Origin: Basidiobolus meristosporus CBS 931.73
Taxonomy: Eukaryota; Fungi; Basidiobolomycota
Assembly: GCA_002104905.1 (NCBI GenBank)
Contig: MCFE01000516.1
Coordinates: 1 to 63,727 of the forward strand
Direction: 5' to 3'
DNA: 63,727 nucleotides
Under the pieces are notes generated by a model. It saw nothing but the letters and a program-made list of their open reading frames with translations, searched no databases and was not told where the DNA came from. Positions within the stretch are counted from its first letter, which is position 1; the number at the start of each line of letters is the position of its first letter. Shown here in pieces: positions 27,045 to 61,023 of the stretch. The position numbers were made by a program, and so were the translations under genes.

Positions 27045-27976
27045 TTAAACAATCTGCTGTGTCGATAGAGGTGTGAGGGTATTACGCAGTGTAAGTCGCT
27101 CACCAAGAATTGCGTATGATGCAATCATTAGAAGGGTATTGTGAGCAACTGGATCGCCTGTCTCGAAACATTTGGCCGTAACATTGGCCACAGCCTCCTA
27201 TTTCATCCAGCCCAATATTTTACATGACTCCTTGGTGATTTTTTGGCGAAACAGACCATTAATTGGGGAATAGATGTTTCTGGCAGCCGGAGCAAAGAAA
27301 GGATTCTTGGTTGGGAGGTAGAGTTCCTCGGGGATGTATGGTTCGACGGCTTCCCTAAGAATTCACTTTTCTACCAGGCTGCCTGTTTCATTGGGACGGA
27401 GCTTGACTGAGCTTTGGTGATCTGAAAGTTAGTATTAGTGCTGTGAGGCTCTATGGTGGAAGAACTCCACTTACGATGGAAGACCGTTCACATATTCAGT
27501 CAAGAAATGGTCAAGGAACGGAGTCCGAGCCTCAATTGAGCGTGCCATCTCACTACGATCACCCAAGAAGTTACAAAGACCATCGTGCAAAATCGGCATG
27601 TTCTCAGAATACTAATGGCCTAGTTAGAATGTGGCCCAATATACCAAATCCTTTTGAACACTCTACCAGAGCTGCATGTAGTGGGGGCCATTTGCACCAC
27701 TTAAAAAACCAGATGCGAGGGATAGTGGTAGGTCAGGGACCTCAGTGCGCTTTAAAAAGGAGTCTGGCCTTAGTGGACATGGGTTGTTGATCACCTTCCA
27801 AGTTGATGATTGATAAATCTTCTACTTGGCATATACTACGGTGGGCTTGTCTTCCCAAAGGCATCAATTTCATCAAAATAGATCCGGAAGATGTCACTTG
27901 TGATTCATCACCAAACGTTGGATGGGCTAGTTTGTAATCTCGCTGGCTTAGTAAAACTTTTCGAATCACAGCACAT
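27045..27976 (-). pseudogene. AsnB-like amidotransferase pseudogene, copy A (internal deletion, nonsense codons)
   Basis: Exon-2 remnant LSIINLEGDQQP abuts exon-6 sequence (KRTEVPDL..LASG); TGG>TGA at 27363 and TGG>TAG at 27198; last-exon homology ends near 27045. Confidence 0.85.
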
Positions 27977-28527
27977 TGCTCCCAATCATGTTAGAATGGG
28001 ATATAAAAAACCCACTTTACTGAGCTCATTAACATGGATTTGTAATGAAGGGATAACGGTGGCTGGTTAGAAGAAGGATTGGGATGGAATGATGGAAACC
28101 ACAATGTAGTATTCACCAGGAAAGGTCGGTATAATAAACTGTGAGCTCTAGGCCAGAGGTAAGCAAATCCAGAGTAAGTTAAGGTGCTATAGAACTGTCA
28201 GTGCCATGTTTTGAGTAAATACAACTATATGGTATTGTAAATAATTATGTTGCAGACTTGATCCAGGTTAGATATATATCCACATACATGATTCCAGCAG
28301 TGGGAATTACCAATATATATGTTCTATGTGTAGTCACTAGTAAGAGCCTAGGTGTGATTGTCGATTCTGTTACGTTCTCCTTCATTCACTACATATTTAG
28401 TATTGACTTCACAATGCTATCTACCGCTTCTTGCAAACCAAGATCTAAGAGTTTTTGTAACAATTGGAATAATTTTAATGATGAATACTATGCACCGCAG
28501 GATGCACTCCATAACATAAAAACCGTA

Positions 28528-30971
28528 CTACAAAGCTGTATTACAGAAAGTGGTGTAAGTAGGTACCTGGAACTTCTCACCAAGAATCACATATGAAGTA
28601 AGCACCAGAAGGGAGTTGTGGATGACTTGATCACCAGTCTCGAAGTACTGAGACATAATGTCTGCCACACCCTCCCACTTTAACCAGCCTAATGCCTCAC
28701 ATGACTCCTTGGTTAATTTCTGGCGGAAGAGTTCGCTCACTGGCGAATAGTTGTTTCTCGCAGCTGGCGCGAAGAAAGGATGCTTGGTTCGGAGGTAGAG
28801 CTCCTCGGTGATGTATGGCTTGACAGCCTCGCGAAGAATCCACTTTTCTACCAGCTCACCTGTCTTGCTAAGTCGAAACTTGAACTGAGACTGTTGTGAT
28901 TCAGTGGGTTAGTGCTGATGTTGAGAGGCATGATGAGTGGAGTAGTCACACTTACGGTGGAAGACCGTTCACATATTCAGTTAAGAAGTGATCAAGGAAT
29001 GGTGTTCTAGCTTCAATGGAGTGAGCCATCTCGCCACGGTCACCCAGAAAGTTGCAAAGGCCATTGGGCAAAATCGTCTTGTTCTCACAATACTAGTGAC
29101 TTGGTCAGAATACAGACTGGGATACAAAATCATCTTGAGCAACCTACCAGAGCTGAATGTAATGGATGCCAGTTGTGGGCGATTTTCCGTCTTGCTTCAC
29201 CGCTTAAACCGGAAGCAATGGCTAATGAAGGATCAGGAACCCCAGTCCTTTGTAGGGCGGAGTCGGTGTATACCTCCTTGTTCACATATAGGAACTTGCC
29301 TATCAGCTGAGGAGTAACTATCCCATTGAGCATACGTTTGGGTATTGGACTGTCATCTATTTCAACTTTGCCTGCCAATGATCCATAAGCCTTCAACTGC
29401 GCATTTGACTCGTGATAATTTAGAAGATCTGCTCTGTCTTTTTCGGACAAAGTCGGGAATGAGGCAGCAAGATCCGGTTCCAGCAAATAATCTGGTTCAA
29501 AGAATTTGTAACCCGCAAAATGCTCGTCGGATCCTTCTCCGGTGAGCACCACCTAGCCAACATCATATCAGTATCGTAACGGCTACCAAATAATCAACCG
29601 ATGCTGATACCTTGTAACCCGCATCCCGCACAAACTTCGAGAGTAGGAACTTGCTTACACCATTCAGATTAGCAACTGGCATCTCAAAGTGCCAGATAGC
29701 ATCCGAGAAGGCCTCCGCAACCAATTCGTCCGTGATCTCAAGTTTATCAAAGATTGCGTCACAGAATTCGGCTGTTCTTTCGGCGACTGGTCCTTCGTCC
29801 AAATGATTGCCCTCTGGAAATATCCATTCCGTCAGTATTACTGTCTTGACCCCTCTCTTAGCGGCGTGCAGGACTACTTACCTGGGAATGAGATGGTGAA
29901 TGCACGAATCTGAGCACTTGGATCCTTTTCCCGAAGGATCTTGGTGGCAATACCAGCGATGCAAGAACTATCGACCCCTCCACTCAGGTAGATACCAACT
30001 GGTACATCAGATCTCAATCGCTGTCTGACCGCCTCCACCAGGCGAGATCTAACCCCTTCAATCATTTCTTCAATGGATCTTGGGTCTTTCACACGCTTGT
30101 CAGGATAGTCGGCATCCCAGTATCTTTCTACGCGGAAAGTTCCAGACAGAGTAGTTGTAATATAATGACCTGGGGGGATCTTCGATTCACACAGGAATTT
30201 GAGGGATTTACAAGCAAATATCAGTCAATGTTGGAGAAATTACCTTGGATATACCGGCAAATGGTGTTCTCATATCTGTTATTGGCCCGCCTTGGACAAT
30301 GGAATCAATATCCCAGGCCATCTTCAGGCCGAGCGGGGGGAAGGCTTTGATCTCACTCGCAATGTAAAGTCGGCCATCTTTGTTCGCGTAGTACAGTGGC
30401 TTGATACCAAATCGATCTCTTGCGGCCAGGAAAATGCTCCGCTTTGTATCCCATAAACACAAAGCAAACTCCCCACGAAGGTGCTCCAAGAATGAGTATC
30501 CATACTCTTCATATCTGTAAGTAATGGAGTGAGCCCTCTTAGTGACAAGTGGTATGGTAATAATGTGCGGAAGTAACATACAAATGTAAAGCGATCTCGC
30601 TATCACTGGAGGTTTTGAATGTGTGACCAGCAGCAATCAGCTCCTCTCTGATCCGCTCGAAGTCGTAGAACTCTCCATTGACAATGATGTGAATGGTGTT
30701 GGTCTTATTGGAGATGGGCTGTTGGCCACCATCCAAGTCGATGATTGACAAACGGGTGTGGCCCAAGCCTTCAGGTGAAAGTATGAGTGAGCACAGTCGA
30801 TTGAGATGGAAGAATTATACACCTACCAACGCGGTTTGATGGATCAATGTATCTTCCGTTGGAGTCAGGTCCCCTGTGTAGGATGGAATGAAGTGAGGCA
30901 TCCAACTGAGCCTCAGTGATAGGCACCAATTGGCAGCTGTCGCAGTCAACATAAGCTACAATTCCGCACAT
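28528..30971 (-). CDS. AsnB-like glutamine amidotransferase, copy B (8 exons, ~670 aa estimated)
   Basis: [86 protein letters not shown]; seven GT-AG introns restore the frame. Confidence 0.9.
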
Positions 30972-31190
30972 TCTTAGAGATTCAAGAGAAGTGAATATAC
31001 AGCCAAGAGGTCTGGTCTCATTTATAGAGCCCGATCTCATCTGGATTCTAGTGAGGTTATCCTGATTCTTCTAACCGGCTAAATGATTGCCTTTCCGGCC
31101 TCGCATTCTGCTGTCGAAGCAAGAATATAGGGAAAATTTACTATCTCTTTCCCCGAATCCCGGTATTCGCAACGATCTTACCACACATGC

Positions 31191-31210
31191 CGGAGAAATT
31201 GGAAAAGCCG
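31191..31210. promoter_or_regulatory. CGG-N14-CCG inverted motif upstream of copy B
   Basis: CGGAGAAATTGGAAAAGCCG, ~220 bp upstream of the ATG; same spacing in three other copies. Confidence 0.5.
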
Positions 31211-32329
31211 ATTCTGGGGAAACAAGTAACTATTAATACTTCTAGTGTTGGAAGGTCCGATCTGGCATCCCATCACAATGATCAAGATGGCTCATTTAGT
31301 ATACTTGGTAGACTGTGAATGTGTCACCAGCCATGCCCTTGAATCCATTATTATGTACGACCTTCGTAGTCCTCATTTTTCCGCCTCAGTTCCAAATAAT
31401 CCATACCTCGTACCTATAAACCAAACGCAAATCCCATTATCTCAACTACATCATCTTACAATGGAAGAGTATGTAAGTGTCTTTAAATTCGATAGCATCC
31501 TTTGCCGTTGAAATGATCATTTCTCGTCCTCCTTACAGCAACGTGCCAAATCCTTATAGTCCAGAATTACGGGTCTTCAAGATTTCCTGTTCTCATTAGC
31601 CAATCACTCACATAGGTGTTTCCCTATCCATAAAAAATTCCCAGTGACGAGGGAGGTGGCTTTAGGATATAATATGGTGTGGGTTACGCCTCGCGCCACC
31701 TGCTTTCGACCTGCATATTTAGGATAAACCTGCGATACGTACACCCTTGGGAAACTTACTCTGACACTCCAGAGCCAATATGGCAATTTAGGATGACGAT
31801 CAATAACGGGGCCTAAATTAGGAAATTCCAGTGGTGGTTGGTGTTACAGGCAGCGAATGGAATGATGGTGAGGCAAGAATGAGAGATGAGATGTGGGGAA
31901 GACAATGCCGAAGTGGGTTATGTTACCAGGTAGAGATCTTCGGTAATGTATGATTTGACAACCCTCCAAAGAGTACCTTTTCTACAAGCTTTAGACTGGG
32001 TGATAGCCCATATACCTCGGTTTGTATACCATCCCAGCACGTCGACTGTTGGATAGTGAGCAGCCCGAGGAGTCAGACTAGGTACTTCTCTCGATAAAGA
32101 GTTCCCGAGGGTAACGTCCTCATGCTAGATTTGCCATTCTCGTTTTCGGTGTCACCCTCTACATGATTTTCGTAGTCAGTTGCTCTCTACATGGAGGTTC
32201 GATATGGGTGGTCATTCTGCCAAATCTATCCACTTTAGGATACCAACTCGCTTATCCAAAATTTTAATACGGCTTGGACCAGTTGTGATAAGAATGATGT
32301 GGGAATATTTCGTGAGAGTGCCTGTAATT

Positions 32330-34762
32330 TTACACAACCATATTCCCAAAGGGTGAGTAAGGGGGAACCCGAAACTTCTCACCAAGAATCACATATGAAG
32401 TAAGCACCAGAAGGGAGTTGTGGGCAACGAGATCACCAGTCTCGAAGTACTGAGAAATAATGTCTGCCACACCCTCCCACTTTAACCAGCCTAATGCCTC
32501 ACATGACTCCTTGGTTAATTTCTGGCGGAAGAGTTCGCTCACTGGCGAATAGTTGTTTCTCGCAGCTGGCGCGAAGAAAGGATGTTTGGTCCGGAGGTAG
32601 AGCTCCTCGGTGATGTATGGCTTGACAGCCTCGCGAAGAATCCACTTTTCTACCAGCTCACCTGTCTCACTGAGCCCCAACTTGACTGAGCTGTTGTGAT
32701 TCAGTGGGTTAGTGCTGATGTTGAGAGGCATGATGGGTGGAGTAGTCACACTTACGGTGGAAGACCGTTCACATATTCAGTTAAGAAGTGATCAAGGAAT
32801 GGTGTTCTAGCTTCAATGGAGTGGGCCATCTCGCCACGGTCACCCAAAACGTTGCAAAGACCATTAGGTAGGAGGGTTTTGTTCTCACAATACTAGTGAC
32901 TTGGTCAGAATACAGACTGGGATACAAAATCATCTTGAGCAACCTACCAGAGCTGAATGTAATGGATGCCAGTTGTGGGCGATTTTCCGTCTTGCTTCAC
33001 CACTTAAACCGGAAGCGATGGCTAATGATAAATCAGGTGCTCCAGTCCGATGTAGTACATAATCGTTATATACACTCTTATTCACGTATAGAAACTTGCC
33101 GACCATCTGAGGGGTGCTAATTCCATTGAGCATTCGCTTAGTCACAGGGCTGTCGTCTATGTCAATTTTCGCTCCCATTGTTCCAGGAACCACCGATTTT
33201 GAGTGAATTTCATTGTCTAGAAGGGTAACTCTGTCCATTTCGGATAGAGGCTTCAACGAAGTCGTTAAATCTAGTTCGAGCAAATAATCAGAGGCAAAGG
33301 TCTTGTAGCCAGCAAAGTGTTCGTCAGACCCTTCTCCAGTAAGAACAACCTATTGTCTCATCAAATCAACATCATGAAAGCTCTCAAAACGTGATCTTAT
33401 TCTCGTACCTTGTAGCCCGCATCACGCACAAACCTCGAGAGTAGGAACTTGCTAACGCTGTTTACGTTGGGAACTGGCATCTCAAAATGCCAGATGGCAT
33501 CCTCAAAGGCCTCAGCAATCTTCTCGTCAGTGATCTCGAGCTTGTCAAAGATTGTGTCGCAGAACTCGGCTGTTCTTTCGGCAATCGGCCCTTCATCCAA
33601 ATGATTGCCCTCTGGAAATTCTAGTCAGTATCATTATCTCTCTCATCGCTCCCCTATCACCCCATAATACTGTTTACCTGGGAATGAAATGGTGAATGCA
33701 TGAATCCGAGCATTGGGATCCTTCTCTCGGAGAATCTTGGTGGCTATGCCAGCGATGCAAGAGCTGTCTATTCCTCCACTCAGATACACTCCGACTGGGA
33801 CATCGGATCTCAATCGCTGTCTGACTGCCTCTTCCAGGCGCGATCTAACCCCTTCAATCATCTCCTCAATGGATCGGGGGTCCTTCACTCTCTTGTCTGG
33901 GTAGTCAGCGTCCCAGTATTTTTCCATGTGAAAGGATCCAGATAGAGTGATTGTGATATAATGACCTGGCGGAACCTTTGGTGGTCCATCACAAGCTGTG
34001 TCAATAGAATGTAGAGGGGAAGTGTAATGCTGATGTCATACTTTGGAGATTCCAGCAAATTGTGTTCTCATGTCGGTCAATGGCCCACCATGGACAATGG
34101 AGTCAACATCCCAGGACATCTTCAGGCCGAGTGGGGGGAAAGCTTTGATCTCACTCGCAATGTAAAGCCTGTCATCCTTGTTTGCGTAGTAGAGCGGCTT
34201 GATACCGAATCGATCCCTTGCGGCAAGGAAGACGCTTCTCCTGGTGTCCCATAGACAGAAAGCAAATTCCCCGCGAAGGTGTTCTAGAAATGAGTACCCA
34301 TACTCTTCGTACCTGTCAAGATTGAATCCGCTTAATCGAGAGTGGAGTGGTGATAGAGTACTGAGGCAACATACAAATGCAAAGCGATCTCACTATCACT
34401 CGAGGTTTTGAATGTGTGTCCACTGGCAATCAGCTCCTCCCTGATCCGCTCGAAGTCGTAAAACTCTCCATTAACAATGACGTGAATATCGTCGGTCTCG
34501 TTAGATAAGGGCTGCTGACCACCTTCCAAGTCGATGATTGATAAACGGGTGTGACCCAATCCTTCATACAGAGGCATAAGTAAAGATGGGTCATTGAAAT
34601 GCTGTTGATGAACATACCAACACGCTTCAGTGGGTCGATATATCTTCCGTTGGAGTCCGGCCCTCTATGCAATATGGTGCGAAGAGAGGAAGTCAACTGA
34701 GCCTCTGTAACAGGAGCTAATTGGCAACTGTCACAATCAACATAAGCTACAATTCCACACAT
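32330..34762 (-). CDS. AsnB-like glutamine amidotransferase, copy C (8 exons)
   Basis: Same motifs and seven intron positions; traced by hand with no stop or frameshift. Confidence 0.9.
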
Positions 34763-35750
34763 TTATGGATGATTGTAACCTCAGCCTGGAAATCGAGTCA
34801 TTTATAGAAAAAGGAGCCATGTGCCTCCAGTCATCTCCAAAATAGAATCCATTCCGATGCACGATCCCTAAAATCATACTGGCGGGCTTTCAGGCAAGAA
34901 ACCATTGATGATTCATGGTCTGAGCTAAGAACATTGGTTGATCTTACCCTGCTGGTAGGTTTACATTTAGGCTGACTTAGCAATCCATGTGCCGTTTGAT
35001 AGAGAAACCAATGGAATCACATGTATCATGTCCATAAAGCATACCTTCTAATTAGTCAGCTTGTTTTGTTTGATGTAAACGGATGAATATGGCACATGCA
35101 AATCCTCTCCCACTATATGCTTTATAATCCACCAATGATCGTCATAAAAAAATGCGCATGGATGTGTCTATTTTTGATGTATTACTCGTCATCCGAATTA
35201 GTTTCTGTCTGAGAGCCTCACGATTACTTGTAGCTGATTTCTACAGAATATTGGCTTTCGAGCACACCCAAAACCATACCATATAATATCGTGCCTTGAG
35301 GCTCCACACATCCAGAAATAACAAGCATATATCTGTACAATACGATCCACTCCGGAATCGATATTCATTACCAGTCCAGTTTAGAAATGCACGTTCGCCT
35401 GCCAACGAATGGACGTTAGCAATAATTTTAAAGCAGGTTTCCTCCTCGGAGTTACAATACTGTAGCCATTTGTAGTAGGGAGATTTATTCTAGGTCACTA
35501 TCCTCAGAGAAACCGTCGAATATGGCTCTAACCAGTTGGAGAATTTATTGATTGATAATCTCGATTTAATAAATCTTCCTATTTCAGAATGGCAGTACCA
35601 GCTTGGTAAAAAATTCGGTACTTTAACACTTGCACTACCCCCAGATATTCCGAGGTAGCCAAAGCTTAGATCAACTCTAATAGTTACAATGATGGATGGA
35701 AGTTCCCACCGCATGTAGTGATGGGGATGAAGCCTCATGGCCGAATTACT

Positions 35751-38190
35751 CTAAGGAGCGTAGGCGGGAATCTGGAACCTCTCCCCAAGAATCACATAGG
35801 ATGTGAGCACCAGAAGAGTATTATGAATTACTTGATCACCTGTTCCGAAATACTTGTTCAGATTATCGGCAACTGGCTCCCACTTCAACCAGCCTAATGC
35901 CTCACAAGACTCCTTGGTTAATTTCTGGCGGAAGAGTTCGCTCACTGGCGAATAGTTGTTTCTGGCTGGAGGTGCGATAAAAGGATGCTTGGTTCGGAGG
36001 TAGAGTTCCTCGGTGATGTATGGCTTGACAGCTTCCCGGAGAACCCACTTTTCCACTAGCTCGCCTGTTTCATTGGCCCAAAGTTTGGCCGAGCTGTTGC
36101 AATCCGATGTTGAGTATTAGTGCTTTGCAGCTTAATGAACGGAGGGGGCACACTTACGGTGGGAGGCCATTCACATATTCGGTTAAGAAGTGATCAAGGA
36201 ATGGTGTTCTAGCTTCAATGGAGTGAGCCATTTCACCACGATCGCCTAAGAAGTTGCAAAGAACATTAGGTAGGAGAGTTTTGTTCTCAGAATACTAGCG
36301 GCTTGGTTAGAACGCGATCCAGGACATCAAATCGTTTTACATAACCTACCAATGCTGCATGTAGTGGATGCCACTTGTGAGAGATCTTCCGTCTTGCCTC
36401 ACCGCTTAGGCCGGAAGCGATAGTCAATGATAGATCCGGGGGCCCGGCTCGTTTTAGAGCGGAGTCGGCATATACTTCCTTATTTACGTATAGGAACTTG
36501 CATAATGTCTGAGGAGTGTTGATTCCATTGAGCATTCGCTTGGTTACTGGGCTGTCATCAAATTCGATATTTCTTCCTACTGATCCGTGAGTCCTCAACT
36601 GAGAGGGCTGTTCATTACCGTTTAAAAGTTCGAATCTATCACTTTCAGACAGAGTATTGAATGAAGCGGTAAGATCCGGTTCCAGCAAATAATCTGGCTC
36701 AAAAAGCTTGTAACCGGCAAAGTGTTCGTCAGACCCTTCTCCTGTGAGCACCACCTAGTCAACATTATATTAGTATCATACGTGCTTATAAATAGTCAAC
36801 CTATGCTCATACCTTGTAACCCGCATCCCGTACAAACTTCGAGAGCAGAAACTTACTTACACCATTCAGGTTGGGAATTGGCATCTCAAAGTGCCAGATA
36901 GCATCTTCAAAGGCATCCGCAACCAATTCGTCCGTGATCTCAAGTTTATCAAAGATTGCGTCACAGAATTCGGCTGTTCTTTCAGCGACTGGTCCTTCGT
37001 CCAAATGATTGCCCTCTGGAAATATTTATCACGTCATTATTACGGTTCCGCACTCCTCCCCCATCGCCGTGCAATATCGCTTACCTGGGAATGAAATGGT
37101 GAATGCACGAATCCGAGCATTGGGATCTCTCTCGCGGAGGATCTTGATGGCAATACCAGCGATGCAAGAGCTGTCTATTCCTCCACTCAGATACACTCCG
37201 ACTGGGACATCAGATCTCAATCGCTGTCTGACTGCCTCTTCCAGGCGCGATCTAACCCCTTCAATCATCTCCTCAATGGATCGGGGATCCCTCACTCTCT
37301 TGTCTGGGTAGTCAGCATCCCAATACCTTTCCATTTGAAAAGATCCAGACAGGGTAGCTGTAATGTAATGACCCGGAGGAACCTTTCGTTCACAAAGAAA
37401 TTCAATACGATTACAAGCGAATGTCGGTAACTCGAAAGTTATTTAGAGTAACGATGAATGAATTACCTTGGATATACCGGCGAATGGTGTTCTCATATCA
37501 GTTAATGGGCCTCCGTGGACAATGGAGTCAACATCCCAGGTCATCTTCAGGCCGAGCGGGGGGAAGGCTTTGATCTCACTCGCAACATAGAGCCTGCCAT
37601 CCTTGTTTGCGTAGTACAGTGGCTTGATACCAAATCGATCTCTTGCGGCCAGGAAAATGCTCCTTTTTGTATCCCATAGGCACAAAGCAAACTCCCCACG
37701 AAGGTGCTCCAAGAATGAGTATCCGTACTCTTCGTACCTGTAAATGGTAAATTCTCTTGGTTACACTGTGGTGTGGTAATAATATGCGGAAGCAACATAC
37801 AAATGTAAAGCGATCTCGCTATCACTGGAGGTTTTGAATGTGTGGCCGGCAGCAATCAGCTCCTCTCTGATCCGCTCGAAGTCGTAGAACTCTCCATTGA
37901 CAATAATGTGAATGGTGTTGGTCTTATTGGAGATGGGCTGTTGGCCACCATCCAAGTCGATGATTGACAAACGGGTGTGGCCCAAGCCTTCAGGACAAGC
38001 AGTAAGTAAAGACAGTCAATCGGGACTTGCTGGCTGTACACTCACCAACGCGGTTTGATGGATCAATGTATCTTCCGTTGGAGTCAGGCCCCCTGTGCAA
38101 GATGGAGTGAAGCGAAGCATCCAGCTTCGCCTTGGTGATGGGCTCCAATTGGCAACTGTCACAATCCACATAGGCTACAATTCCGCACAT
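35751..38190 (-). CDS. AsnB-like glutamine amidotransferase, copy D (8 exons)
   Basis: Same motifs and intron positions; appears intact. Confidence 0.88.
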
Positions 38191-38404
38191 CTTTGGATGT
38201 AAATAGGATAATTATGAATATAACCTGGAAATGAAGTCTCCTTTATAGGAAGCTTAACTTCGCTTAGACTCTATTGAGTTTACCCTGATTCCTCCAACCG
38301 GCTAAACGTTTGTTAACCTAGCCTCATACTTTATCTTGAAGGCAGCTAGTAGGTAAGAAGTTACTATCTCCATCCCTTGGCTTCGGTATTATCAAGTACC
38401 GCAT

Positions 38405-38424
38405 CGGAGAAAATAGAATAGCCG
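38405..38424. promoter_or_regulatory. CGG-N14-CCG motif upstream of copy D
   Basis: CGGAGAAAATAGAATAGCCG, ~215 bp upstream of the ATG. Confidence 0.5.
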
Positions 38425-39655
38425 AGACCATGACGAATGGGTGCTATCCTGTAATTAACAACACTTTTGACGTTGGGATGTTACTAAAGGCGCTGGGCCC
38501 GATCTGACATCACAGGATTCAGAGATATGATTCATTCAGGTTTCCTCGCCAACTGTGGATGTATCACCTATCACGTCCAATATAGAATCCATTAATACAA
38601 TATACTTGCTAATTTTGTCTTTCCACATGAACAGGTTATTCACTGTATCGATTTGGGAATGTGTCTTTGAGGTTCCTTGATATCGTGTCAAGCATCTTTT
38701 CTGGGCATACTGCATTGATGACAAGTTTGCACATTCCCCAGCTAAGCCACAAGTCTACCTATTGTTGAACCTACAACCGAAAATCCAAACATCGTTGTCT
38801 TACCTATCGTGTCCACAAGGCAAGAGCGTTTATGGGTCTATCCCGTCGAAGCATTCACTTTTGGTCCCTAGTGCATTTGCAGGCGATATTAAAAGTCCAT
38901 CTTCCTATGCGATGCGCTGAGGATAGATAGCCTTTGTGGTGGTCAATTCACACCCTCCGGTCATCATTATGAGTTTTCCTACAGCGGCGAGGTGCAGGAT
39001 TATCATATGAGCTCCCCCAAACATAGCACATTCGTGCACAAAACTTCCCAGCGTCAGAGATCAATGATGGTGCATGTCATTAAACTGGAGTAAATCGTTA
39101 CAACTCCACCAAACAGTGAATACTCTTATGGTAAATTTTCCTGATGATCAGGCGGCGAGGCTGAATTAGGAAATTTTGACGAGATGATGGTGGGACCAAA
39201 ATGATGGGAAATACGGCGGGGACCAGGTCAAAAGTGGTTGGACTGCATCACCAGATACAGTGGTGCATGGCTTTGCAATTACAAGCCCACTGCTTTAGCA
39301 TGCACATTCGATCTGATCGATATCATAGATGCTATAAACACCGCTAAGAGGGTGCATTTTCATGATTTTGCTTGCCATTCGAAGAGTTCTGATTCCTTAA
39401 AGCAGTCGCGTAGTTTCGTTTGCAGCGCAGATTCCTGCATAGTGCTTGTAATATTAAATGTATTTGAGTTTAACCAGGCGAGCCATACCCTCCTAATTGG
39501 TTCTTTTATTTCCGAAACCGGATTTATTCATCAGTTGGGTTGGTCATATATGGACATTCTGGCAAACCGAGTTACTCTTACAAAGAGCTTTTGACGGCTT
39601 AAGCCGATTAAAATAGTAACGATACTATATAAGATACACCATGGGATTCCTTTCA

Positions 39656-41333
39656 TTATATGACAGCAGCTGGGGCTTTTCCGCTGGAAGTGTAGGTGGC
39701 GACCTGGAATCGCTCCCCCAGGATCACATAGGAGGCAAGTACCAATAGGGTATTATGAGCTACCTGATCACCTGTTTCGAAGTACTTGGTCATAATATCC
39801 GCAACTGGCTCCCATTTCAGCCAGCCTAATGCTCCACATGACTCCTTGGTGATCTTTTCCCGGAAAATGCGACTTATCGGGGAATAAGTGTCTCTGGCAG
39901 CAGGAGCGATGAACGGATGCTTGGTCCGGAGGTAGAGTTCCTCGGTGATGTATGGCTTGACTGCCTCCCGAAGAATCCACTTTTCCACCAGCTCACCCTT
40001 CTCACTGGGCTTGAACTTGACCGAGCTGTTGTGATTCAGTGGGTTAGTGTTGATGCTGAGAGGCTGAATGGGAGGAGTCACACTTACGGTGGAAGGTCAT
40101 TCACATATTCAGTCAGGAAATGATCAAGGAATGGTGTTCGAGCCTCAATGGAGTGGGCCATCTCACCACGATCACCTAGAAAGTTGCAGAGACCATTGGG
40201 CAAGACTGTCTTGTTTTCAGAGTACTGGGAATCTATTTAGAATGAGTTCCAGTATACCAAATGATTTTGAACAACGTACCAGAGCGGCATGGAGTGGGTG
40301 CCATTTGTGAGCAATTTTCCTTCTAGCTTCCCCACTCAAACCAGAAGCCAGGGCCAAGGACAGATCAGGAGCCCCTGTCCGGCTTAAGACATGGTCTGGA
40401 TATACCTCCTTGTTGATGAACATGAATTTGCTTATCATTTGAGGGGTGTTGATTCCATTGAGCATTCTCTTGGATACTGGGCTATCCTCAATATCGATTT
40501 TTTCTCCAATGGATGCATACACCTTCAGTTGGGTGCTAGGTTCGTAATTACTTAGAAGATCTAGTCTGTCACTCTCGGACAGAGGCTTGAACGGAGTGGC
40601 AAGGTCCGGCTCCAACAGATAGTCCGGCTCAAAAAACTTGTAGCCAGCAAAGTGCTCATCAGACCCTTCTCCGGTGAGAACTACCTGTTGCCTCAACTAA
40701 TCAGTATTGTGAAGACTGGTAACTACCTGACTCCTTCTTGTACCTTGTAGCCTGCATCACGTACAAGTCTCGAAAGCAGGAACTTGCCAACACCATTCAC
40801 ATTGGGAATGGGCATCTCGAAGTGCCAAATGGCGTCCTCAAAGGATTCTGCAACCTTCTCATCGGTGACTTCAAGTTTGTCAAAGATTGCGTTGCAGAAT
40901 TCAGCTGTTCTCTCGGCAACCGGTCCTTCATCTAAATTGTTGCCCTCTAGAGATAATCTGTGTGTTAGTTCTATTGCCACATCAGCCCCCTTCATCCAGC
41001 AATATTTACCTGGAAATGAGATGGTGAATGCACGAATCCGAGCGTTGGGATCTCTCTCTCGGAGAATACTGGTGGCTATGCCCGCGATGGAAGAACTGTC
41101 GATTCCCCCACTCAAGTACACTCCGACTGGGACGTCAGATCTCAATCGCTGTCTGACTGCCTCCACCAGGCGAGATCGCACCCCTTCAACCATCTCTTCA
41201 ACGGATCTGGCATCTTTTACTGTCTTGTCTGGATAGTCAGCATCCCAGTATTTCTCTATGTGGACGGATCCAGATAGAGTGGCTGTGATGTAATGACCCG
41301 GTGAAAGCTTAGATATGCACAGGAGTTAGAGGG

Positions 41334-41364
<31 letters not shown>

Positions 41365-42140
41365 AAGCGAATGCCAAAAAAAGGAAGCACATCAAGAGTA
41401 GCACTGGAGGAATTACCTTGGCGATACCGGCGAATGGTGTTCTCATGTCAGTCATTGGCCCGCCATGAACAATGGAATCAACATCCCATGCCATCTTCAG
41501 GCCGAGTGGGGGGAAGGCTTTGATCTCACTCGCAATGTAAAGTCGGCCATCCTTGTTTGCGTAGTACAGTGGCTTGATACCAAATCGATCTCTTGCGGCC
41601 AGGAAAATGCTCCGCTTTGTATCCCATAGGCACAAAGCAAACTCCCCACGAAGGTGCTCCAAGAATGAGTATCCGTACTCTTCGTACCTGTAAATGGCGA
41701 ATTCTCTTGGTTACAAAGTGGCGTGGTAATAATATGCGGAAGCAACATACAGATGTAAAGCGATCTCACTATCACTGGAGGTTTTGAATGTGTGACCAGC
41801 AGCAATCAGCTCCTCCCTGATCCGCTCGAAGTCGTAGAACTCTCCATTGACAATGATGTGAATGGTGTTGGTCTTATTGGAGATGGGCTGTTGGCCACCA
41901 TCCAAGTCGATGATTGACAAACGAGTGTGGCCCAAGCCTTCAGGACAAGCAGTAAGTAAAGATAGTCAATCGGGACATGCTGGCTGTACACTCACCAATG
42001 CGGTTTGATGGATCAATGTATCTTCCGTTGGAGTCAGGCCCCCTGTGCAAGATGGAGTGAAGCGAAGCATCCAGCTGAGCCTTGGTGATGGGCTCCAATT
42101 GGCAACTGTCACAATCCACATAGGCTACAATTCCGCACAT
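39656..42140 (-). CDS. AsnB-like glutamine amidotransferase, copy E (8 exons)
   Basis: Same motifs and intron positions; near-identical to copy G. Confidence 0.88.
41333..41368. repeat. (GAAAGT)5 microsatellite in intron 3 of copy E; 3 units in copy G at 46655-46678
   Basis: Read directly; explains the 12-nt length difference between the matching E and G ORFs. Confidence 0.9.
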
Positions 42141-42362
42141 CTTTGGATGTAAATAAGAAAATAATGAATTCTAGCTGGAGGATAGTTTCATTTATAAGAA
42201 ATCTGAGCTCCCCTGGATTTTATTGGCTGTATCCTGATTGTTCTAAATGGCTAAATATTGGCCAATCCAACCTCTTACCCTGAAGCTATGGCATTTGGCA
42301 AGAGGAACATTATCCTCACTACCCCTAGGTATTGGTGTTAAGAAGCAATTTCCCTCGCATAC

Positions 42363-42382
42363 CGGAGGAATGAGTATAGCCG
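42363..42382. promoter_or_regulatory. CGG-N14-CCG motif upstream of copy E
   Basis: CGGAGGAATGAGTATAGCCG, ~223 bp upstream of the ATG. Confidence 0.5.
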
Positions 42383-43509
42383 AAACCTTGGGGTAAGCAA
42401 GCATTATACTGGCATTATTAATACTACGACGCTGGGCGGATTATGACCTCATTACATCGCTGGATTCAAGAAAATGGTCAACGTTAATGTACCGCTTATT
42501 ATTTCCAAATTAGAATTCATTGCTGTAGACCCCCGAAATCACTCTGGTTGGATCCATCTTCCCACCTCTGGTGTAGGCTCATCTCGCGAGGCATCCGACA
42601 GCCTCATTGATGATTCACTGATAGTTTGCCAAGCATATTGGGCGAACTGGGTACTTTAATGGCCGGTTCTCTTCTCAATAATCTAGCAAGACTGCCAATC
42701 CTTGTGCCCACCACGCGTGCGCAAATCCCATTGCTGAAGCCAATTAAATCAAATCTACGAGTCCGCATGACCAGCAGTTTCACTTCATTTAGCTCGAAAA
42801 TACAGAGGCCATGCTCAATTCTGGTTTGTGGTGAGCACCTACGCAAATCCTATGACCATGTCTGCGATTCTTAATGTTGGCGGTTCTGGGGTTACTTCTC
42901 GTTGATTGTATGCAGTTAAAAAGGCTCCACTAATGTGATATGGATAAACCTGATGGACAATTCATACCTTCTGGTATCACCATGAGAGACACAGGAATAT
43001 TCGTTTCTCCTTTACCAATCGTTCCCACATGACCTTCTCAGACACACTTTTATCGCTCATAAAAGACTCCCAGTGGCAGAAACTAGCGATATAGAGCGCA
43101 TCATCTGTACAACCATTAAACATCAATTGGTGTTTAGATTGATGATCAACAAGCGGAGTTGAATGAGAGCTGTGGTGCAGAATTGGGCTGTGCTACAAAC
43201 AGTGTAGGATTGGTAAATCCATGCGCTAGCACTTTGCTTGTTTCACTCGGGGGGGGGGATGCGACTGAGGTCATGCCCTTCGTCGGGTTAAATCTAAGAT
43301 CAATGTAACCAACAGTGCCCATTCATGATCTGCGCTTGCCATTCCAGATTAAGAACCCTTCGCTACTATACGATACTTACTATGCGCAGTAGCCCCACGA
43401 ATCTAGTTTTTGCCAGTATACAACGCAATGGAACCACTACTATGCAGACTCGTTAGAATACATATATGAATGCATTTTCCATACATTTTTGGGTGGAGTT
43501 TGTATCATT

Positions 43510-44054
43510 GGATCTTTCTGCAAGAATCATATAGGATACGAACACTAGAAGGGTGTTGCGGGATTGTGAGCCACTTGCTCACCTGCTTCGAAATGTCTGC
43601 AACTGGCACTCATTTCGGCCAGTTTGATGCCTCACATGACACCTAGGGAATTTTTTTGCGAGAGTTCACTTACGGGTGAATAGTTAATCTAAGTAACGCG
43701 CAAGGTTTTCGGTGTGTGTGGTGATAATCAGCTCATGAGTAATCCACTTGGGGCCGTAAAACTCATCATTGATAATGAAGTGAATTGGGTAGATCTTATT
43801 AGGGGTAGGCTGTTGTCCAACGTCCAAGCTAATGATCATAAGCGAGTGTGACCCAGGCATTTAAGACAAAGTGTAAATGAGGACAGCTATTTGAGTGGCC
43901 ATGATTATACACTCACCAACACGGCTCAAAGGATCAACGTATCTTCAGTTGAAGTCAGGCCCTTGTAAGGTGCAATATAGTTGTTTCACTGAGTCTCGGT
44001 AATAGAAGCTAATTGGTAACTGCCATAGTCAGTATTAACTAAAATTCCACACAT
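43510..44054 (-). pseudogene. AsnB-like amidotransferase pseudogene, copy F (about 1.9 kb internally deleted)
   Basis: Decayed ATGTGTGGAATT start, exon 1, intron 1 and exon 2 remnant joined near 43700 to last-exon NYSPVSEL-like sequence; in-frame TGA at 43986. Confidence 0.82.
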
Positions 44055-44294
44055 ATTTGGATGTGGACGATGAATGTGACTTGAACCTGGGAATTGAATC
44101 ATATATAGAAATAGTGACATGTGCCTCGCGGTGTCTCCAAAATTGAATCCATATGATTATCCCTGGGTCGGATTTATTGAATAGACTCTTATTTCTCTAA
44201 CCCTGCTTAATATTCAATTATATGACCAATAATTAAGAAACGTCACTTCTCTACTCCTGACCCACGGCATTATCAGGCAGCTCCCCACCCGCAC

Positions 44295-44314
44295 CGGAGA
44301 AAAGAGAATAGCCG
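44295..44314. promoter_or_regulatory. CGG-N14-CCG motif upstream of pseudogene F
   Basis: CGGAGAAAAGAGAATAGCCG, ~240 bp upstream of the relic ATG. Confidence 0.45.
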
Positions 44315-44977
44315 AGACCAGAACGGTTATTGCGAAGAGTACCATCCAGCAATTATCAATACCTTTGTTGTTACAATATAATGGATGATCTTCGGCCTGA
44401 TTTAACATGGATGATTCACAGAGAAGTCTCACTGCTAACTCTAAATCGCATTCTGTGTCCCTGGTTAGCTGTGATTGTATTACCCGTCTTGCCACAAGTT
44501 AATCTATCCTTGTGAGTCTCGTCCAGAGCTTTGTTGTTGAGTTCGACCTATCGTTTAAAACCATCTCGTAGAGTCCGTTTTTTAGTGCAGTTGCTGTACA
44601 ATGGGCTGAAGAATCTCCCTAATGATGGAGGGTCGTCTACGTGTCTAGTGCGTATCTGTCTTGTCTACGTGAACCAGAAGTGATGCCTTCTGATGGCTTA
44701 GTGGCTTCAATCTGCCAAGGTATGGTGCCCAGTCACTTCCGGATATTCCAACAGAATGCGTAGATGAAAGCTTTAATACAATGGCTCTACTCTATAATTG
44801 TTTCTTTTTTATGAAACGGCGGTTATTCATAATTTATAGTACGAAATATATGAACAATCTGGAAAACAGAATCACTATGGGATATTCAAAATACTTCCAC
44901 TTCACTAGACATCACAATGAGCCTTTTACAACTTGAATCAGTTGATATGATGACAACACCAGACAATATGTGCCATA

Positions 44978-47450
44978 TTACTTAGCATCAATTGTTACAT
45001 TTCTAATAGGAGTGTATGTGGCGACCCGGAATCGCTCCCCCAGAATCACATAAGAAGTCAGCACCAGAAGAGCATTATGAGCTACCTGATCACCTGTTTC
45101 GAAGTACTTGGTCATAATATCCGCAACTGGCTCCCATTTCAGCCAGCCTAATGCCCCACATGACTCCTTGGTGATCTTTTCCCGGAAAAGGCGACTTATC
45201 GGGGAATAAGTGTCTCTGGCAGCAGGAGCGATGAACGGATGCTTGGTCCGGAGGTAGAGTTCCTCGGTGATGTATGGCTTGACTGCCTCCCGAAGAATCC
45301 ACTTTTCCACCAGCTCACCCTTCTCACTGGGCTTGAACTTGACCGAGCTGTTGTGATTCAGTGGGTTAGTGTTGATGCTGAGAGGCTGAATGGGAGGAGT
45401 CACACTTACGGTGGAAGGTCGTTCACATATTCAGTCAGGAAATGATCAAGAAATGGTGTTCTAGCTTCAATGGAGTGTGCCATCTCACTGCGATCACCTA
45501 GAAAGTTGCAGAGACCATTGGGCAAGACTGTCTTGTTTTCAGAGTACTGGCAATCTATTTAGAATGAGTTCCAGTATACCAAATGATTTTGAACAACGTA
45601 CCAGAGCGGCATGGAGTGGGTGCCATTTGTGAGCAATTTTCCTTCTAGCTTCCCCACTCAAACCAGAAGCCAGGGCCAAGGACAGATCAGGAGCCCCTGT
45701 CCGGCTTAAGACATGGTCTGGATATACCTCCTTGTTGATGAACACGAGTTTACTTAGCGTCCGAGGTGTATTAATTCCATTGAGCATTCTCTTGGATACT
45801 GGACTGCCCTCGATTTCGATTTTTTCACCCATTGATGCATACACCTTCAGTTGGGTGCTAGGTTTGTAATTACTTAGAAGATCTAGTCTGTCACTCTCGG
45901 ACAGAGGCTTGAACGGAGTGGCAAGGTCCGGCTCCAACAGATAGTCCGGCTCAAAAAACTTGTAGCCAGCAAAGTGCTCATCAGACCCTTCTCCGGTGAG
46001 AACTACCTGTTGCCTCAACTAATCAGTACTGTGAAGACTGGTAACTACTCGACTCCTTCTTGTACCTTGTAGCCTGCATCACGTACAAATCTCGAGAGCA
46101 GGAACTTGCCAACACCATTCACATTGGGAATGGGCATCTCGAAGTGCCAAATGGCGTCCTCAAAGGATTCTGCAACCTTCTCATCGGTGACTTCAAGTTT
46201 GTCAAAGATTGCGTTGCAGAATTCAGCTGTTCTCTCAGCTACCGGCCCTTCGTTCGAATTGTTGCCCCCTAGAGATAATCTGTGTGTTAGTTCTATTGCC
46301 ACATCGGCCCCCTTCATCCAGCAATATTTACCTGGAAATGAGATGGTGAAAGCACGAATCCGAGCGTTGGGATCTCTCTCTCGGAGAATACTGGTGGCTA
46401 TGCCCGCGATGGAAGAACTGTCGATTCCCCCACTCAAGTACACTCCGACTGGGACGTCAGATCTCAATCGCTGTCTGACTGCCTCCACCAGGCGAGATCG
46501 CACCCCTTCAACCATCTCTTCAACGGATCTGGCATCTTTTACTGTCTTGTCTGGATAGTCAGCATCCCAGTATTTCTCTATGTGGACGGATCCAGATAGA
46601 GTGGCTGTGATGTAATGACCCGGTGAAAGCTTAGATATGCACAGGAGTTAGAGGGAAAGTGAAAGTGAAAGTGAAAGCGAATGCCAAAAAAAGGAAGCAC
46701 ATCAAGAGTAGCACTGGAGGAATTACCTTGGCGATACCGGCGAATGGTGTTCTCATGTCAGTCATTGGCCCGCCATGAACAATGGAATCAACATCCCAGG
46801 CCATCTTCAGGCCGAGTGGGGGGAAGGCTTTGATCTCACTCGCAACATAGAGCCTGCCATCCTTGTTTGCGTAGTACAGTGGCTTGATACCAAATCGATC
46901 TCTTGCGGCCAGGAAAATGCTCCGCTTTGTATCCCATAGGCACAAAGCAAACTCCCCACGAAGGTGCTCCAAGAATGAGTATCCGTACTCTTCGTACCTG
47001 TAAATGGCGAATTCTCTTGGTTACAAAGTGGCGTGGTAATAATGTGCGTAAGCAACATACAGATGTAAAGCGATCTCACTATCACTGGAGGTTTTGAATG
47101 TGTGACCGGCAGCAATCAGCTCCTCCCTGATCCGCTCGAAGTCGTAGAACTCTCCATTGACAATGATGTGAATGGTGTTGGTCTTATTGGAGATGGGCTG
47201 TTGACCACCATCCAAGTCGATGATTGACAAACGGGTGTGGCCCAAGCCTTCAGGACAAGCAGTAAGTAAAGATAGTCAATCGGGACATGCTGGCTGTACA
47301 CTCACCAACGCGGTTTGATGGATCAATGTATCTTCCGTTGGAGTCAGGCCCCCTGTGCAAGATGGAGTGAAGCGAAGCATCCAGCTTCGCCTTAGTGATG
47401 GGCTCCAATTGGCAACTGTCACAATCCACATAGGCTACAATTCCGCACAT
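44978..47450 (-). CDS. AsnB-like glutamine amidotransferase, copy G (8 exons)
   Basis: Same motifs and intron positions; near-identical to copy E. Confidence 0.88.
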
Positions 47451-49133
47451 CTTTGGATGTAAATAAGAAAATAATGAATTCTAGCTGGAGATGGAGTTTT
47501 ATAGGAAATTGGACCTCGTCTGGTTAATTATATATTAAATGGTAAATATTTGCCAATCCAGCTTATTACTCCGAAGCAATGGCAGTTATTTAGGAGAACA
47601 GTATCCTCACTACCCCAAAGTATTAGCAAGAGAAACTGGTTACGGTCTGATATCATTCCACCGACGGATTTTTGAAAGTGTTTAACAGCGTAGTACTACT
47701 TATCATTTCATTTGAACCCATTGCTGCACACGACTTATGAGATTGTAATCCCGCCGTTCCCACGCGAGGTTCTTCAGGTGATGACGTACTTTCACTTTGG
47801 TTCCATATTTGGAGTAAACCAGTCACGCAAGCAATATTTTATGGATGATCAACAAACGGGGACGCATGGGGAAATTCTTATGAGAACCGGTATCACAACC
47901 AACGAAGAAACTACTGGCGAGTCAAAGATAATGTAGAAGTGGGCTTTGTTGCTAACCATTCATGAGAGTTATTCCACCTCGAGTCATTCGCTAGTTTCAC
48001 TGGCGCCGGAGCTATTGTGGTCATACCAATTGTTGGGTTGAATCAATGGCTAATGCGCCCATTCATAAATTGTGCCGACCATCTCCAATTAGGAAATTCC
48101 TGTAATGCTATCCTCTTGAATCCAGGATTTGCCACTACATCATGTGACAACACCGTAGATCTTAAAGCTGGTTCAAATATGTATGGATGCTTTTTATGGT
48201 ATATTGGCTGGATGCCGAAGTGATCTCTTGTACATTTTAAATCCCACCAATAACCTTCAAATGGCTCACCTTTTTCACTGGGTCAACATCTCTATTGTGA
48301 AGATTGATATATTACGGAGTCACACTTGGATTAAAATGTTTACTTAATAAAGGTGGGAAGTTGCATCCTGATATGCTTTGAAAAAAGCAGCAGTAACTCT
48401 TCAGAGCCCCTTATTGTCAATGTTGGCTTGAAATCCATTTGTAGTATCAATATTATATGGCTTTCATATTACTCTCAGCTATGTATAATCCTATTGCCCT
48501 CATATGATGCTTTGTTGTATACTGACCTGATATGGCTGGGCTCTGTATCTCTGAGGCTAATCTGAATATGTAATAATGTTTTGTAGGCTAATGCTAAAAT
48601 AGTTTATACAGAGATTAGACGCTGGTAGAAGATACAACTTTGACTAGTATTCCTAAATCTTGGCTCACAATATGCTATAGGCAGTGGACCTGCACTGTTG
48701 CGTCATTGATCATGTTGCCAGAAAATAAAATATATTCCAACATTAGTATGCTATAGGTACTTAACTGCTAGTTAATGATGATCCCACTATGGTGCTATCT
48801 GACTCTCAATGCCACTCTGCAGTACCCTGGCAATGGAGGGAAATGGAATACATACAGTGGGTTCCACTTCTATCACCAGGTGTTAGATTTTTCATATCAC
48901 TTGGATTTGTTGACTTCTGTTGCACACTCTCCCTAACTGGAAGTCACTTTCATTTGCAAAAAAATACCCCTCAAATGTATACTTTGGACATCTTCTTAAC
49001 CCAACAGGGTGTTGCAGTGGTGTCTTTAGAGTCTTGTATAACAATGGACTTTGGAGAAATGGAAGGTGAGTACAGTTACTATCACAGCGTACCATAGTTT
49101 GATCAGATTCAATATCTAATATATAGTCTTTCT

Positions 49134-61011: not shown

Positions 61012-61023
61012 GGTTATGAGCCC
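61012..61023 (+). promoter_or_regulatory. Copia primer-binding site GGTTATGAGCCC (also at 59770)
   Basis: Reverse complement GGGCTCATAACC matches the initiator tRNA-Met anticodon arm, as in Drosophila copia and yeast Ty5. Confidence 0.8.

Follow-up and report, generated by a model that had tools for sequence, protein, structure and literature searches.

Layout of the tandem array

The window analysed, 63,727 nucleotides long, comprises an entire scaffold of Basidiobolus meristosporus CBS 931.73, the minus strand of which bears, at positions 27045-47450, seven copies of a predicted AsnB-like amidotransferase gene, five of them full-length (B, C, D, E and G) and two decayed (A and F). Self-BLASTN resolved five units of 2.4–2.6 kb (28553-31089, 32357-34771, 35754-38329, 39689-42333 and 45008-47624) together with fragments at 27096-27694 and 43687-44152, all on one strand; DNA identity amounted to 75–81% between old pairs and to 95% between E and G. 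Models of the five full-length genes were built by protein-to-genome spliced alignment, which placed seven GT-AG introns of 55–109 nt at identical positions in each full-length gene, with the phases 2,1,0,2,0,0,1 common to B, C, D, E and G. The array proteins carry the Pfam domains GATase_7 and Asn_synthase, and a Pfam search of the ORFs between the array genes gave no match, leaving no other recognisable gene inside the array. The layout described in an earlier note on this DNA, namely a one-strand array with seven common intron positions and no gene in between, was confirmed, and its outer coordinates agree exactly with those of the spliced-alignment models.

Copy G (44978-47450, minus strand) is intact, has seven introns and encodes 671 aa, identical residue for residue to public protein P0168. 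Copy E (39656-42140, minus strand), likewise intact with 671 aa and seven introns, matches G at 95% DNA identity over 2645 bp, introns and about 190 bp of upstream sequence included. Copies D (35751-38190, 662 aa) and C (32330-34762, 667 aa), both on the minus strand with seven introns, are intact as well; D equals public protein P0170 residue for residue, and the public model of C (P0179) is without exon 1, where the Met-Cys start is located (34762). Copy B (28528-30971, minus strand) is full-length, with seven introns and the complete set of conserved residues, and its frame depends on the splice site of the last exon. A 2-nt insertion, located on the minus strand within the 6-nt stretch 28885-28890, directly follows the conserved intron-7 acceptor, and the frame is kept only via a cryptic acceptor 23 nt further downstream, which is used in the public model (P0174) with a loss of 7 aa. 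Because the two extra nucleotides shift the frame unless the cryptic acceptor is used, B is not cleanly intact, and the earlier count of five apparently intact genes stands with this caveat on B.

Copy A (27045-27767, minus strand) is a pseudogene comprising a 3' part, which corresponds to aa 464–668 of the G protein and has kept introns 6 and 7. Its reading frame is interrupted by two in-frame stops (27365-27363, 27200-27198) and, near 27695, by a frameshift; judging from a weak remnant of aa 32–74 upstream (27757-28086), it is probably also internally deleted. In copy F (43513-44054, minus strand), aa 1–98 (44054-43711) lead straight into a frameshifted remnant of aa 596–654 (43682-43513); a stop (43947-43945) and, near 43994, a frameshift disrupt the first part, and the copy is internally deleted. 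With these stops, frameshifts and missing parts, both copies proved to be the pseudogenes that they had been taken for. The annotation of the non-decayed copies is already public, four array genes bearing the name "asparagine synthetase", and the decayed copies A and F are absent from it.

A mis-assembly of one gene, or of its alleles, into tandem copies had been named in the earlier note as a possible artefact and is hardly conceivable. It could appeal to the short-read contigs, which end at conserved parts, with one chimeric path connecting C to B. Against this, the copies differ in their DNA by 19–25% (E and G by 5%) and have introns, intergenic DNA and C-termini of their own, and word depth is raised, about 2–3-fold, only in the parts common to the paralogs. 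Furthermore, a contig of 1.7 kb from an independent short-read assembly spans 30840-32534, from the 5' end of B across the intergenic region to the 3' end of C. The sequencing runs (X1 and X2) were taken to be genomic DNA, as introns and intergenic sequence are both present in their contigs. Since the copies differ by 5–25% and the independent contig bridges B and C, the array was regarded as real.

Enzyme class and structural relatives

All five full-length copies start with Met-Cys-Gly-Ile, which places a candidate nucleophile Cys right after the initiator Met. Residues of E. coli AsnB to which roles have been assigned (PMC5775275, PMC13284220) were located by alignment. R49, N74, G75, E76 and D98 of AsnB align to R54, N79, G80, E81 and D104 of G; these glutamine-binding residues are invariant or nearly so among 68 family members and among the five copies. 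The PP-loop SGGIDS (267-272), E374, D377 and K584 of G are the counterparts of the AsnB PP-loop, E348, D351 and K449, and are likewise shared across the copies, except that the loop Ile is Val in B. Altogether, 103 family columns are invariant or nearly invariant, and every one of them is identical in B, C, D, E and G.

The array proteins passed the broad model TIGR01536 and failed the AsnB equivalog model NF006949, reaching 320.8 bits where the cut-off is 499 and E. coli AsnB scores 1046. The TTIR of AsnB aligns to P348-N349-V350-N351 of G, i.e. the Thr-Thr-x-Arg motif (T322/T323/R325 in Boehlein's numbering), which has been implicated in beta-aspartyl-AMP formation (PMC5775275), is missing. 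The C-terminal region of AsnB holding Cys523 (PMC5775275) has no counterpart in the array proteins, and between GEGSDE and EARxPFLD the alignment shows about 100 aa inserted into their synthetase domain.

For structural comparison, an AlphaFold2 model of G (mean pLDDT 94) was searched with Foldseek against Swiss-Prot and the PDB. The best reviewed relatives were two chrysogine-cluster enzymes, B6HLP8 from Penicillium rubens (672 aa; 39% identity, TM 0.93/0.92) and I1S3K8 (chry2) from Fusarium graminearum (671 aa; 37% identity, TM 0.93/0.93), each covering residues 1–665 at an rmsd of 2.4–2.6 Å. Like the array proteins, they combine a class II glutaminase domain bearing Cys2 with a PP-loop synthetase domain; they differ in that they lie in an NRPS cluster and act on an anthraniloyl peptide, whereas the array consists of five tandem copies on a scaffold without NRPS or PKS. 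The chrysogine enzymes appear in the literature as ChyC/ChyD (PMC6182556) and ftChyD (PMC9622831), the latter amidating the carboxylate of an anthraniloyl peptide, not aspartate, with Gln or NH4+ plus ATP (PMC9622831). The entry B6HLP8 is labelled 'Amidase chyE'.

The closest solved structure was the hydroxyamidotransferase TsnB9 from trichostatin biosynthesis (PDB 7ylz; Foldseek E 4e-33, TMq 0.74, TMt 0.85), which was also the top PDB match by sequence for another long-form family member (P0005). TsnB9 resembles the array proteins as a tailoring enzyme with an AsnB fold; however, it is bacterial and shorter, has 22% identity, transfers hydroxylamine instead of ammonia, and none of its partner genes lies beside the array. 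The bacterial long-form AsnB enzymes are of similar length (614–652 aa) with 23–25% identity, the TM values by query being 0.76–0.79 for B. subtilis AsnB/AsnO and M. tuberculosis AsnB and 0.73 for B. subtilis AsnH. Some of these enzymes amidate meso-diaminopimelate of peptidoglycan, not Asp, while the array shows no evident cell-wall context.

The fungal AS-B-type enzyme SoaC (Myrothecium) acts on a small hydrophobic acid, making sorbamide and no Asn; a role in self-protection has been proposed for it, and its gene is clustered with a PKS (PMC13284220). SoaC and the array proteins both have the SGGIDS PP-loop, the E/D/E motif and the catalytic Lys (PMC13284220). This Lys lies about 230 residues past the EGSDE motif in SoaC, about 206 in the array proteins and about 97 in E. 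coli AsnB, a spacing which suggests that SoaC may carry the same long insertion.

E. coli AsnB (1ct9), yeast ASN1 and ASN2 and human ASNS belong to the same superfamily with the same two-domain chemistry, but the 34% identity between canonical AsnB and the array proteins is restricted to the first 390 aa, the C-termini differ, and the four canonical enzymes reached TM values of only 0.61–0.64 to the G model. A grouping of the copies with ASN1/2, raised in the earlier note as a possible outcome, was thus not seen in the fold comparison, and the lead to 'ChyD-type' enzymes given there proved right. By sequence and by the modelled fold, the array genes are classed as AsnB-like and outside canonical AsnB/ASN1, as had been proposed. 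Because sequence and fold both depart from canonical AsnB, the designation as non-housekeeping amidotransferases is supported.

That the copies are nevertheless true glutamine-dependent asparagine synthetases, multiplied to raise their dosage for storing or assimilating nitrogen, appears very unlikely. Their public names, the passed TIGR01536 model and a predicted glutaminase and adenylation machinery that is complete speak for such enzymes; the failed equivalog model, the missing Thr-Thr-x-Arg motif and Cys523 region and the much closer fold of the chrysogine amidotransferases speak against them. Two further points tell in the same direction: SoaC, a putative relative by motif spacing, produces no asparagine, and in fungi the distribution of the long-form family is patchy, with multiple copies.

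Divergence of the copies and distribution of the family

Pairwise dN/dS values were calculated for the five copies according to Nei-Gojobori and amounted to 0.10–0.12 for whole genes and 0.03–0.09 for the glutaminase domain. Differences between the copies cluster in a paralog-variable segment in exon 6 (45671-45925, minus strand; aa 396–480 of G). It falls within the insertion peculiar to the synthetase domain of this family; here dS was highest (1.1–1.8) and dN/dS was 0.16–0.29. No positive selection was detected in this segment by the pairwise Nei-Gojobori method, which with five sequences has little power for single sites. Its core and most variable part, residues 411–436 of G, was modelled with low pLDDT and varies in length family-wide, and is probably a flexible loop. 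Most other differences between the copies are conservative (I/V, K/R, S/A), and the promoter regions have diverged.

A gene-conversion tract was delimited at 46900-47495 (G coordinates, minus strand), covering the 5' part with introns 1 and 2, in which D, E and G are 93–98% identical and which B joins at 92–97% over approximately 46900-47270. Further downstream, identity among D, E, G and B is 65–84%. This mosaic of identity, which includes the introns, shows repeated gene conversion. The variable segment was spared, also between E and G. Judged from the sequences, conversion is homogenising large parts of the genes, and the copies are not visibly diversifying.

The long-form family (about 670 aa) occurs in fungi, oomycetes and bdelloid rotifers. 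In a family tree which included E. coli AsnB, on a long branch, and left out the yeast and human ASN sequences and the chrysogine enzymes, the five copies were monophyletic (SH-aLRT 100) and sister to Mucoromycota; since they form one clade, the expansion is lineage-specific. Among the best 120 matches in a collection of 5.8 billion proteins, the B. meristosporus members came only from the scaffold of the array, no member from another Basidiobolus species was present, and the next matches after the array copies were from Mucorales with 55–57% identity. Aphanomyces, Halteromyces and Mycena have smaller arrays of this kind. Substrate information is confined to family members from Ascomycota; a literature search on An12g07660 returned no papers, and the array goes unmentioned in the Basidiobolus secondary-metabolism paper.

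The flanking ORFs encode an alpha/beta hydrolase, a Cid1-type polymerase, an OHCU decarboxylase, WD40 proteins, a PX protein, a KA1 kinase, a C2H2 zinc-finger protein and copia gag repeats. No backbone gene (NRPS, PKS or terpene synthase) and no tailoring gene adjoins the array, and the earlier statement that no NRPS/PKS backbone gene is in the window was borne out over the whole scaffold. Chytrid family members, on the other hand, lie in a conserved cluster with OMT, ADH, MFS and BAHD genes, joined by an NRPS-like gene in Spizellomyces.

Proposed chemistry and history of the array

The array probably arose when a single accessory family, the ChyD-type long-form branch of the AsnB superfamily, expanded in tandem within this lineage; its copies are conserved and look near-equivalent. 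By homology, the N-terminal class II (Ntn) glutaminase domain would free ammonia from glutamine through Cys2, and the C-terminal PP-loop domain (SGGIDS 267-272, E374, D377 and K584 in G) would use ATP to adenylate the carboxylate of the substrate, so that attack of ammonia on the acyl-AMP would yield a carboxamide. Aspartate is most likely not the acceptor, which by analogy with the characterised relatives is probably a small carboxylic acid of aryl, acyl or peptidyl type.

The array probably grew by unequal crossing-over. The duplicates are considered old because dS is at least 1 wherever conversion is absent. Members are lost by internal deletion and decay (A, F and perhaps B), strong purifying selection holds each surviving copy, and recurrent gene conversion partly homogenises the set. 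The birth-and-death process proposed in the earlier note is real, as seen from the two decayed copies, the young or recently homogenised E/G pair and the compromised copy B. Taken together, the picture is more that of near-equivalent enzymes retained because of dosage or separate regulation than of a panel gaining new specificities; strong purifying selection on paralogs this old (dS of at least 1), whose promoters have diverged, would also suit a functional partitioning.

The notion of a diversifying system, with paralogs amidating different carboxylates such as metabolites of gut or soil bacteria in detoxification or tailoring, was not upheld and is rather unlikely. Four or five old paralogs have been kept (dS of at least 1 in unconverted parts), their promoters have diverged, and their differences gather in aa 396–480, which escaped conversion even in the E/G pair, adjoin the region with the acceptor-binding residues in AsnB and may have a part in specificity. 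The family has expanded repeatedly in other lineages, and SoaC sets a precedent for weak-acid amidation as self-protection (PMC13284220). However, dN/dS in the variable segment gives no excess of replacements, the residues conserved in the family are the same in all copies, most of the remaining changes are conservative, residues 411–436 behave like an unconstrained surface loop, and gene conversion homogenises the copies instead of diversifying them. A more specific proposal, distinctly doubtful, is that the insertion (aa 396–480) tunes the copies to different free carboxylic acids, by which an early-diverging gut fungus would amidate bacterial or dietary weak-acid antimicrobials with no need of a backbone synthase.

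On the favoured reading of near-equivalent accessory enzymes, what the array shows so far is a commonplace enlargement, within one lineage, of an enzyme family already known, and other genomes offer parallels; it is also a clean case of birth-and-death and gene conversion in a fungal tandem array. The public "asparagine synthetase" genes of Basidiobolus would be re-labelled as putative ChyD-type carboxylate amidotransferases, a change that would extend to Mucorales, chytrids, oomycetes and rotifers. A substrate, if found, could reveal a cluster-independent amidation or detoxification in early-diverging fungi.

Horizontal transfer from bacteria is not the simplest reading of the origin of these genes and was rejected as such, given the seven spliceosomal introns and the position of the copies as sister to Mucoromycota inside the fungal clade. 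Basal 'metagenome' sequences in the tree are not clearly bacterial; the contig of one of them also carries a weak Zn-cluster match and a G-alpha gene.

Array anatomy and gene models

By self-comparison of the window, five units of 2.4–2.6 kb were located on a single strand (28553–31089, 32357–34771, 35754–38329, 39689–42333 and 45008–47624), together with two shorter fragments at 27096–27694 and 43687–44152. DNA identity was 75–81% for the older pairs and 95% over 2645 bp for E vs. G, which also fall in one 90% cluster. Pfam searches with ORF pieces of G returned GATase_7/GATase_6 and Asn_synthase, and exon 1 of G opens with Met-Cys-Gly. Gene models were built using a purpose-written protein-to-genome spliced aligner, with the relative P0005 as first and the G product as second query. 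The full-length copies were modelled on the minus strand at 47450..44978 (G, 671 aa), 42140..39656 (E, 671 aa), 38190..35751 (D, 662 aa), 34762..32330 (C, 667 aa) and 30971..28528 (B), each with seven GT-AG introns of 55–109 nt at identical positions (phases 2,1,0,2,0,0,1). The array ends obtained in this way coincide with those of the earlier note (27045–47450), and ORFs between the copies were without Pfam match, in line with its statement that no other recognisable gene lies there.

The modelled G and D proteins equal the public proteins P0168 and P0170 with no difference; the public model of C (P0179) lacks exon 1 (window 34618–34762), which carries the catalytic Met-Cys start. Intron 4 (63 nt; window 46269–46331 in G and 40947–41009 in E) is stop-free in the frame entering it, so that plain ORF scans read through (156-aa ORF); its retention would insert 21 aa with the frame kept.

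An assembly artefact as the source of the array was ruled out, because the copies differ too much from one another and an independent contig spans B–C. This 1.7-kb Logan contig, from a set representing two genomic DNA runs of one sample (possibly the sample of the window assembly itself), links the 5′ end of B to the 3′ end of C. Word depth was raised only in sequence common to paralogs. Relative to the scaffold, these short-read contigs also show one extra G nucleotide behind 34015, within intron 3 of C, and a dozen single-base differences (window 34015 and 29258–32842), for which cross-assembly of paralogs, a second haplotype or errors in the assembly could account.

The earlier count of five intact genes and two pseudogenes was confirmed by the models as regards the array, while the reading frame of B depends on a cryptic acceptor. 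B carries 2 extra nt immediately past the conserved intron-7 acceptor, and its last exon is out of frame if the conserved splice sites are used; in the public model P0174, an acceptor 23 nt downstream skips the insertion and regains the frame at the cost of 7 aa (window 28885–28955). F consists of aa 1–98, interrupted by a stop and a frameshift, and runs straight on into a remnant of aa 596–654 that is itself frameshifted; it is a DNA-level duplicate with an internal deletion. A retains aa 464–668 with two stops, one frameshift and introns 6 and 7; judged from a weak remnant of aa 32–74 immediately upstream, it is probably also an internally deleted DNA-level duplicate.

Assignment to the ChyD-type branch

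P0168 (G) scored above the broad TIGR01536 model and below the AsnB equivalog NF006949 (321 vs. 499 bits). BLASTP against E. coli AsnB aligned residues 2–386 (34% identity) and a short EARxPFLD block, nothing more. Using residue roles from PMC5775275, the glutamine-site residues R49, N74, G75, E76 and D98, the PP-loop, E348, D351 and K449 (E. coli AsnB numbering) were found to be kept in the array proteins, whereas the AsnB motif Thr-Thr-Ile-Arg, whose Thr and Arg residues are implicated in aspartate and ATP binding (PMC5775275), is aligned with Pro-Asn-Val-Asn. Unlike E. coli AsnB, the array protein has ~100 more residues between GEGSDE and EARxPFLD, and the C-terminal region of AsnB is without counterpart.

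A confident AlphaFold2 model of G was obtained from 68 homologues (pLDDT 94, pTM 0.94). Of the solved structures, it came closest to TsnB9 (7ylz; TMq 0.74, TMt 0.85), a hydroxyamidotransferase; E. coli AsnB and human ASNS ranked lower. Among reviewed UniProt models, the top two were the chrysogine-cluster proteins B6HLP8 (Penicillium rubens) and I1S3K8 (chry2, Fusarium graminearum), with 671–672 aa, 37–39% identity and TM 0.93 over the full length, compared with 0.76–0.79 for bacterial long-form AsnB proteins and 0.61–0.64 for ASN1, ASN2, AsnB and ASNS. On sequence and predicted structure, the array genes are thus classed as accessory ChyD-type amidotransferases, not housekeeping AsnB; the failed NF006949 model and the TM values uphold the earlier description as AsnB-like but non-housekeeping.

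The AsnB-type enzymes of the chrysogine cluster are named ChyC and ChyD (PMC6182556). In vitro, ftChyD amidated the anthranilate carboxyl of a peptide with Gln or NH4+ and ATP (PMC9622831), and sorbic acid is amidated by SoaC, a second fungal enzyme of AS-B type, which makes no asparagine (PMC13284220); motif spacing suggests that SoaC may have a long insertion like that of the array proteins. By homology, each array enzyme would most likely catalyse glutamine- and ATP-dependent amidation of a non-aspartate carboxylate, a substrate class that we infer, and several near-equivalent enzymes would most likely catalyse the same amidation.

Conservation and gene conversion among the copies

Nei–Gojobori estimates, calculated for whole genes and by segment, gave dN/dS of 0.10–0.12 for the older pairs (dS 0.65–1.05) and 0.19 for E/G (dS 0.11). 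In the glutaminase domain dN/dS was 0.03–0.09, with dS of just 0.09–0.32 among B, D, E and G; for B vs. C, dS was 0.20 in the last third and ~1 elsewhere. The variable segment (aa 396–480 of G) had the top dS (1.1–1.8) and dN/dS of 0.16–0.29. When the genomic sequences, with their introns, were compared in sliding windows, a mosaic of identity matching this segmental dS emerged: identity in the 5′ 600 bp is 93–98% among D, E and G, in exon 4 it is 90–96% between C and D, and in the 3′ 700 bp it is 88–98% between B and C; E and G reach 100% across several hundred bp, patches excepted. Together, mosaic identity and segmental dS bear the mark of gene conversion that has acted repeatedly on old duplicates.

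Resistance to homogenisation of the segment at 45740–45880 gained partial support from the 19 positions at which E and G differ in 45700–45899, yet even there the replacement-to-silent ratio is low. In the family alignment, 103/103 invariant or nearly invariant columns are unchanged in B, C, D, E and G, and differences between copies outside the variable segment are mostly conservative. Residues 411–436, the most variable stretch, differ in length across the family and form the sole low-confidence part of the G model. Conservation with concerted evolution is what these comparisons show, as opposed to the diversification that the earlier note had proposed, and nothing in them indicates paralogs with different acceptors. 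Its birth-and-death component is borne out by the decayed copies A and F and by the compromised frame of B.

Phylogeny and genomic neighbourhoods

Homologues of ~650–700 aa are widespread. Genomes of Mucorales often contain several, and others occur in Mortierellomycota, chytrids, many Agaricales (with many copies in Mycena), Dothideomycetes, Aspergillus, saprolegnian oomycetes and bdelloid rotifers. In an IQ-TREE phylogeny rooted with E. coli AsnB, which a very long branch separates from the eukaryotic family containing the array, B, C, D, E and G formed a single clade (SH-aLRT 100) with a Mucoromycota clade as sister (support 92). Among the best 120 matches in the protein collection, B. meristosporus members came only from this scaffold, and the next-best matches had 55–57% identity. 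The single clade, its sister and the same-species matches therefore indicate that a fungal gene inherited vertically was expanded specifically in this lineage. The rotifer proteins P0161 and P0269 (Adineta, Rotaria), 55–57% identical to G, group with a clade of Rhizoclosmatium and oomycetes; this looks like horizontal acquisition in rotifers and perhaps in oomycetes.

Local duplication is recurrent in the ChyD-type family. Aphanomyces euteiches has three adjacent copies, two tandem and one inverted, adjoined by an M20 peptidase gene (L003:7873–17536), A. stellatus two neighbouring genes on one 4.5-kb contig (locus tags 003835/003836), Halteromyces two neighbouring copies and Mycena latifolia two copies 4 kb apart. 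In the chytrids Spizellomyces (L002:125–20951) and Geranomyces (L007:5630–19118), the family member is surrounded by a conserved set of O-methyltransferase, zinc alcohol dehydrogenase (ADH), MFS transporter and BAHD acyltransferase genes, a candidate biosynthetic cluster, with an additional A-T-TE NRPS-like gene in the former and a laccase (multicopper oxidase) in the latter. Neighbours in Parasitella, Aspergillus niger and A. pseudoustus gave no such cluster hint. Across these genomes, the family member is sometimes a tailoring enzyme in clusters and often stand-alone. In Spizellomyces, P0272 fuses the amidotransferase and an MFS gene in one 1141-aa model.

On the 63,727-bp scaffold, which the window covers in full, no NRPS or PKS was found among the flanking genes, as had been noted before. 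These are ordinary genes on the left (alpha/beta hydrolase, Cid1-type polymerase, OHCU decarboxylase, WD40 proteins, DUF5745 and PX proteins, KA1 kinase and C2H2 zinc-finger protein) and copia-type gag repeats on the right. The scaffold end adjoining the array is retrotransposon-rich and of lower GC (0.36–0.42), with a cluster at 49139–61904 in which one repeat is present, in either orientation, as six or more partial copies (mutual identity 72–93%), and an ORF at 60968–61771 encoding copia-type gag (Retrotran_gag_2) and DUF4219. On the left, an ORF without introns at 6204–6749 (minus strand) encodes the OHCU decarboxylase domain of urate degradation in full length.
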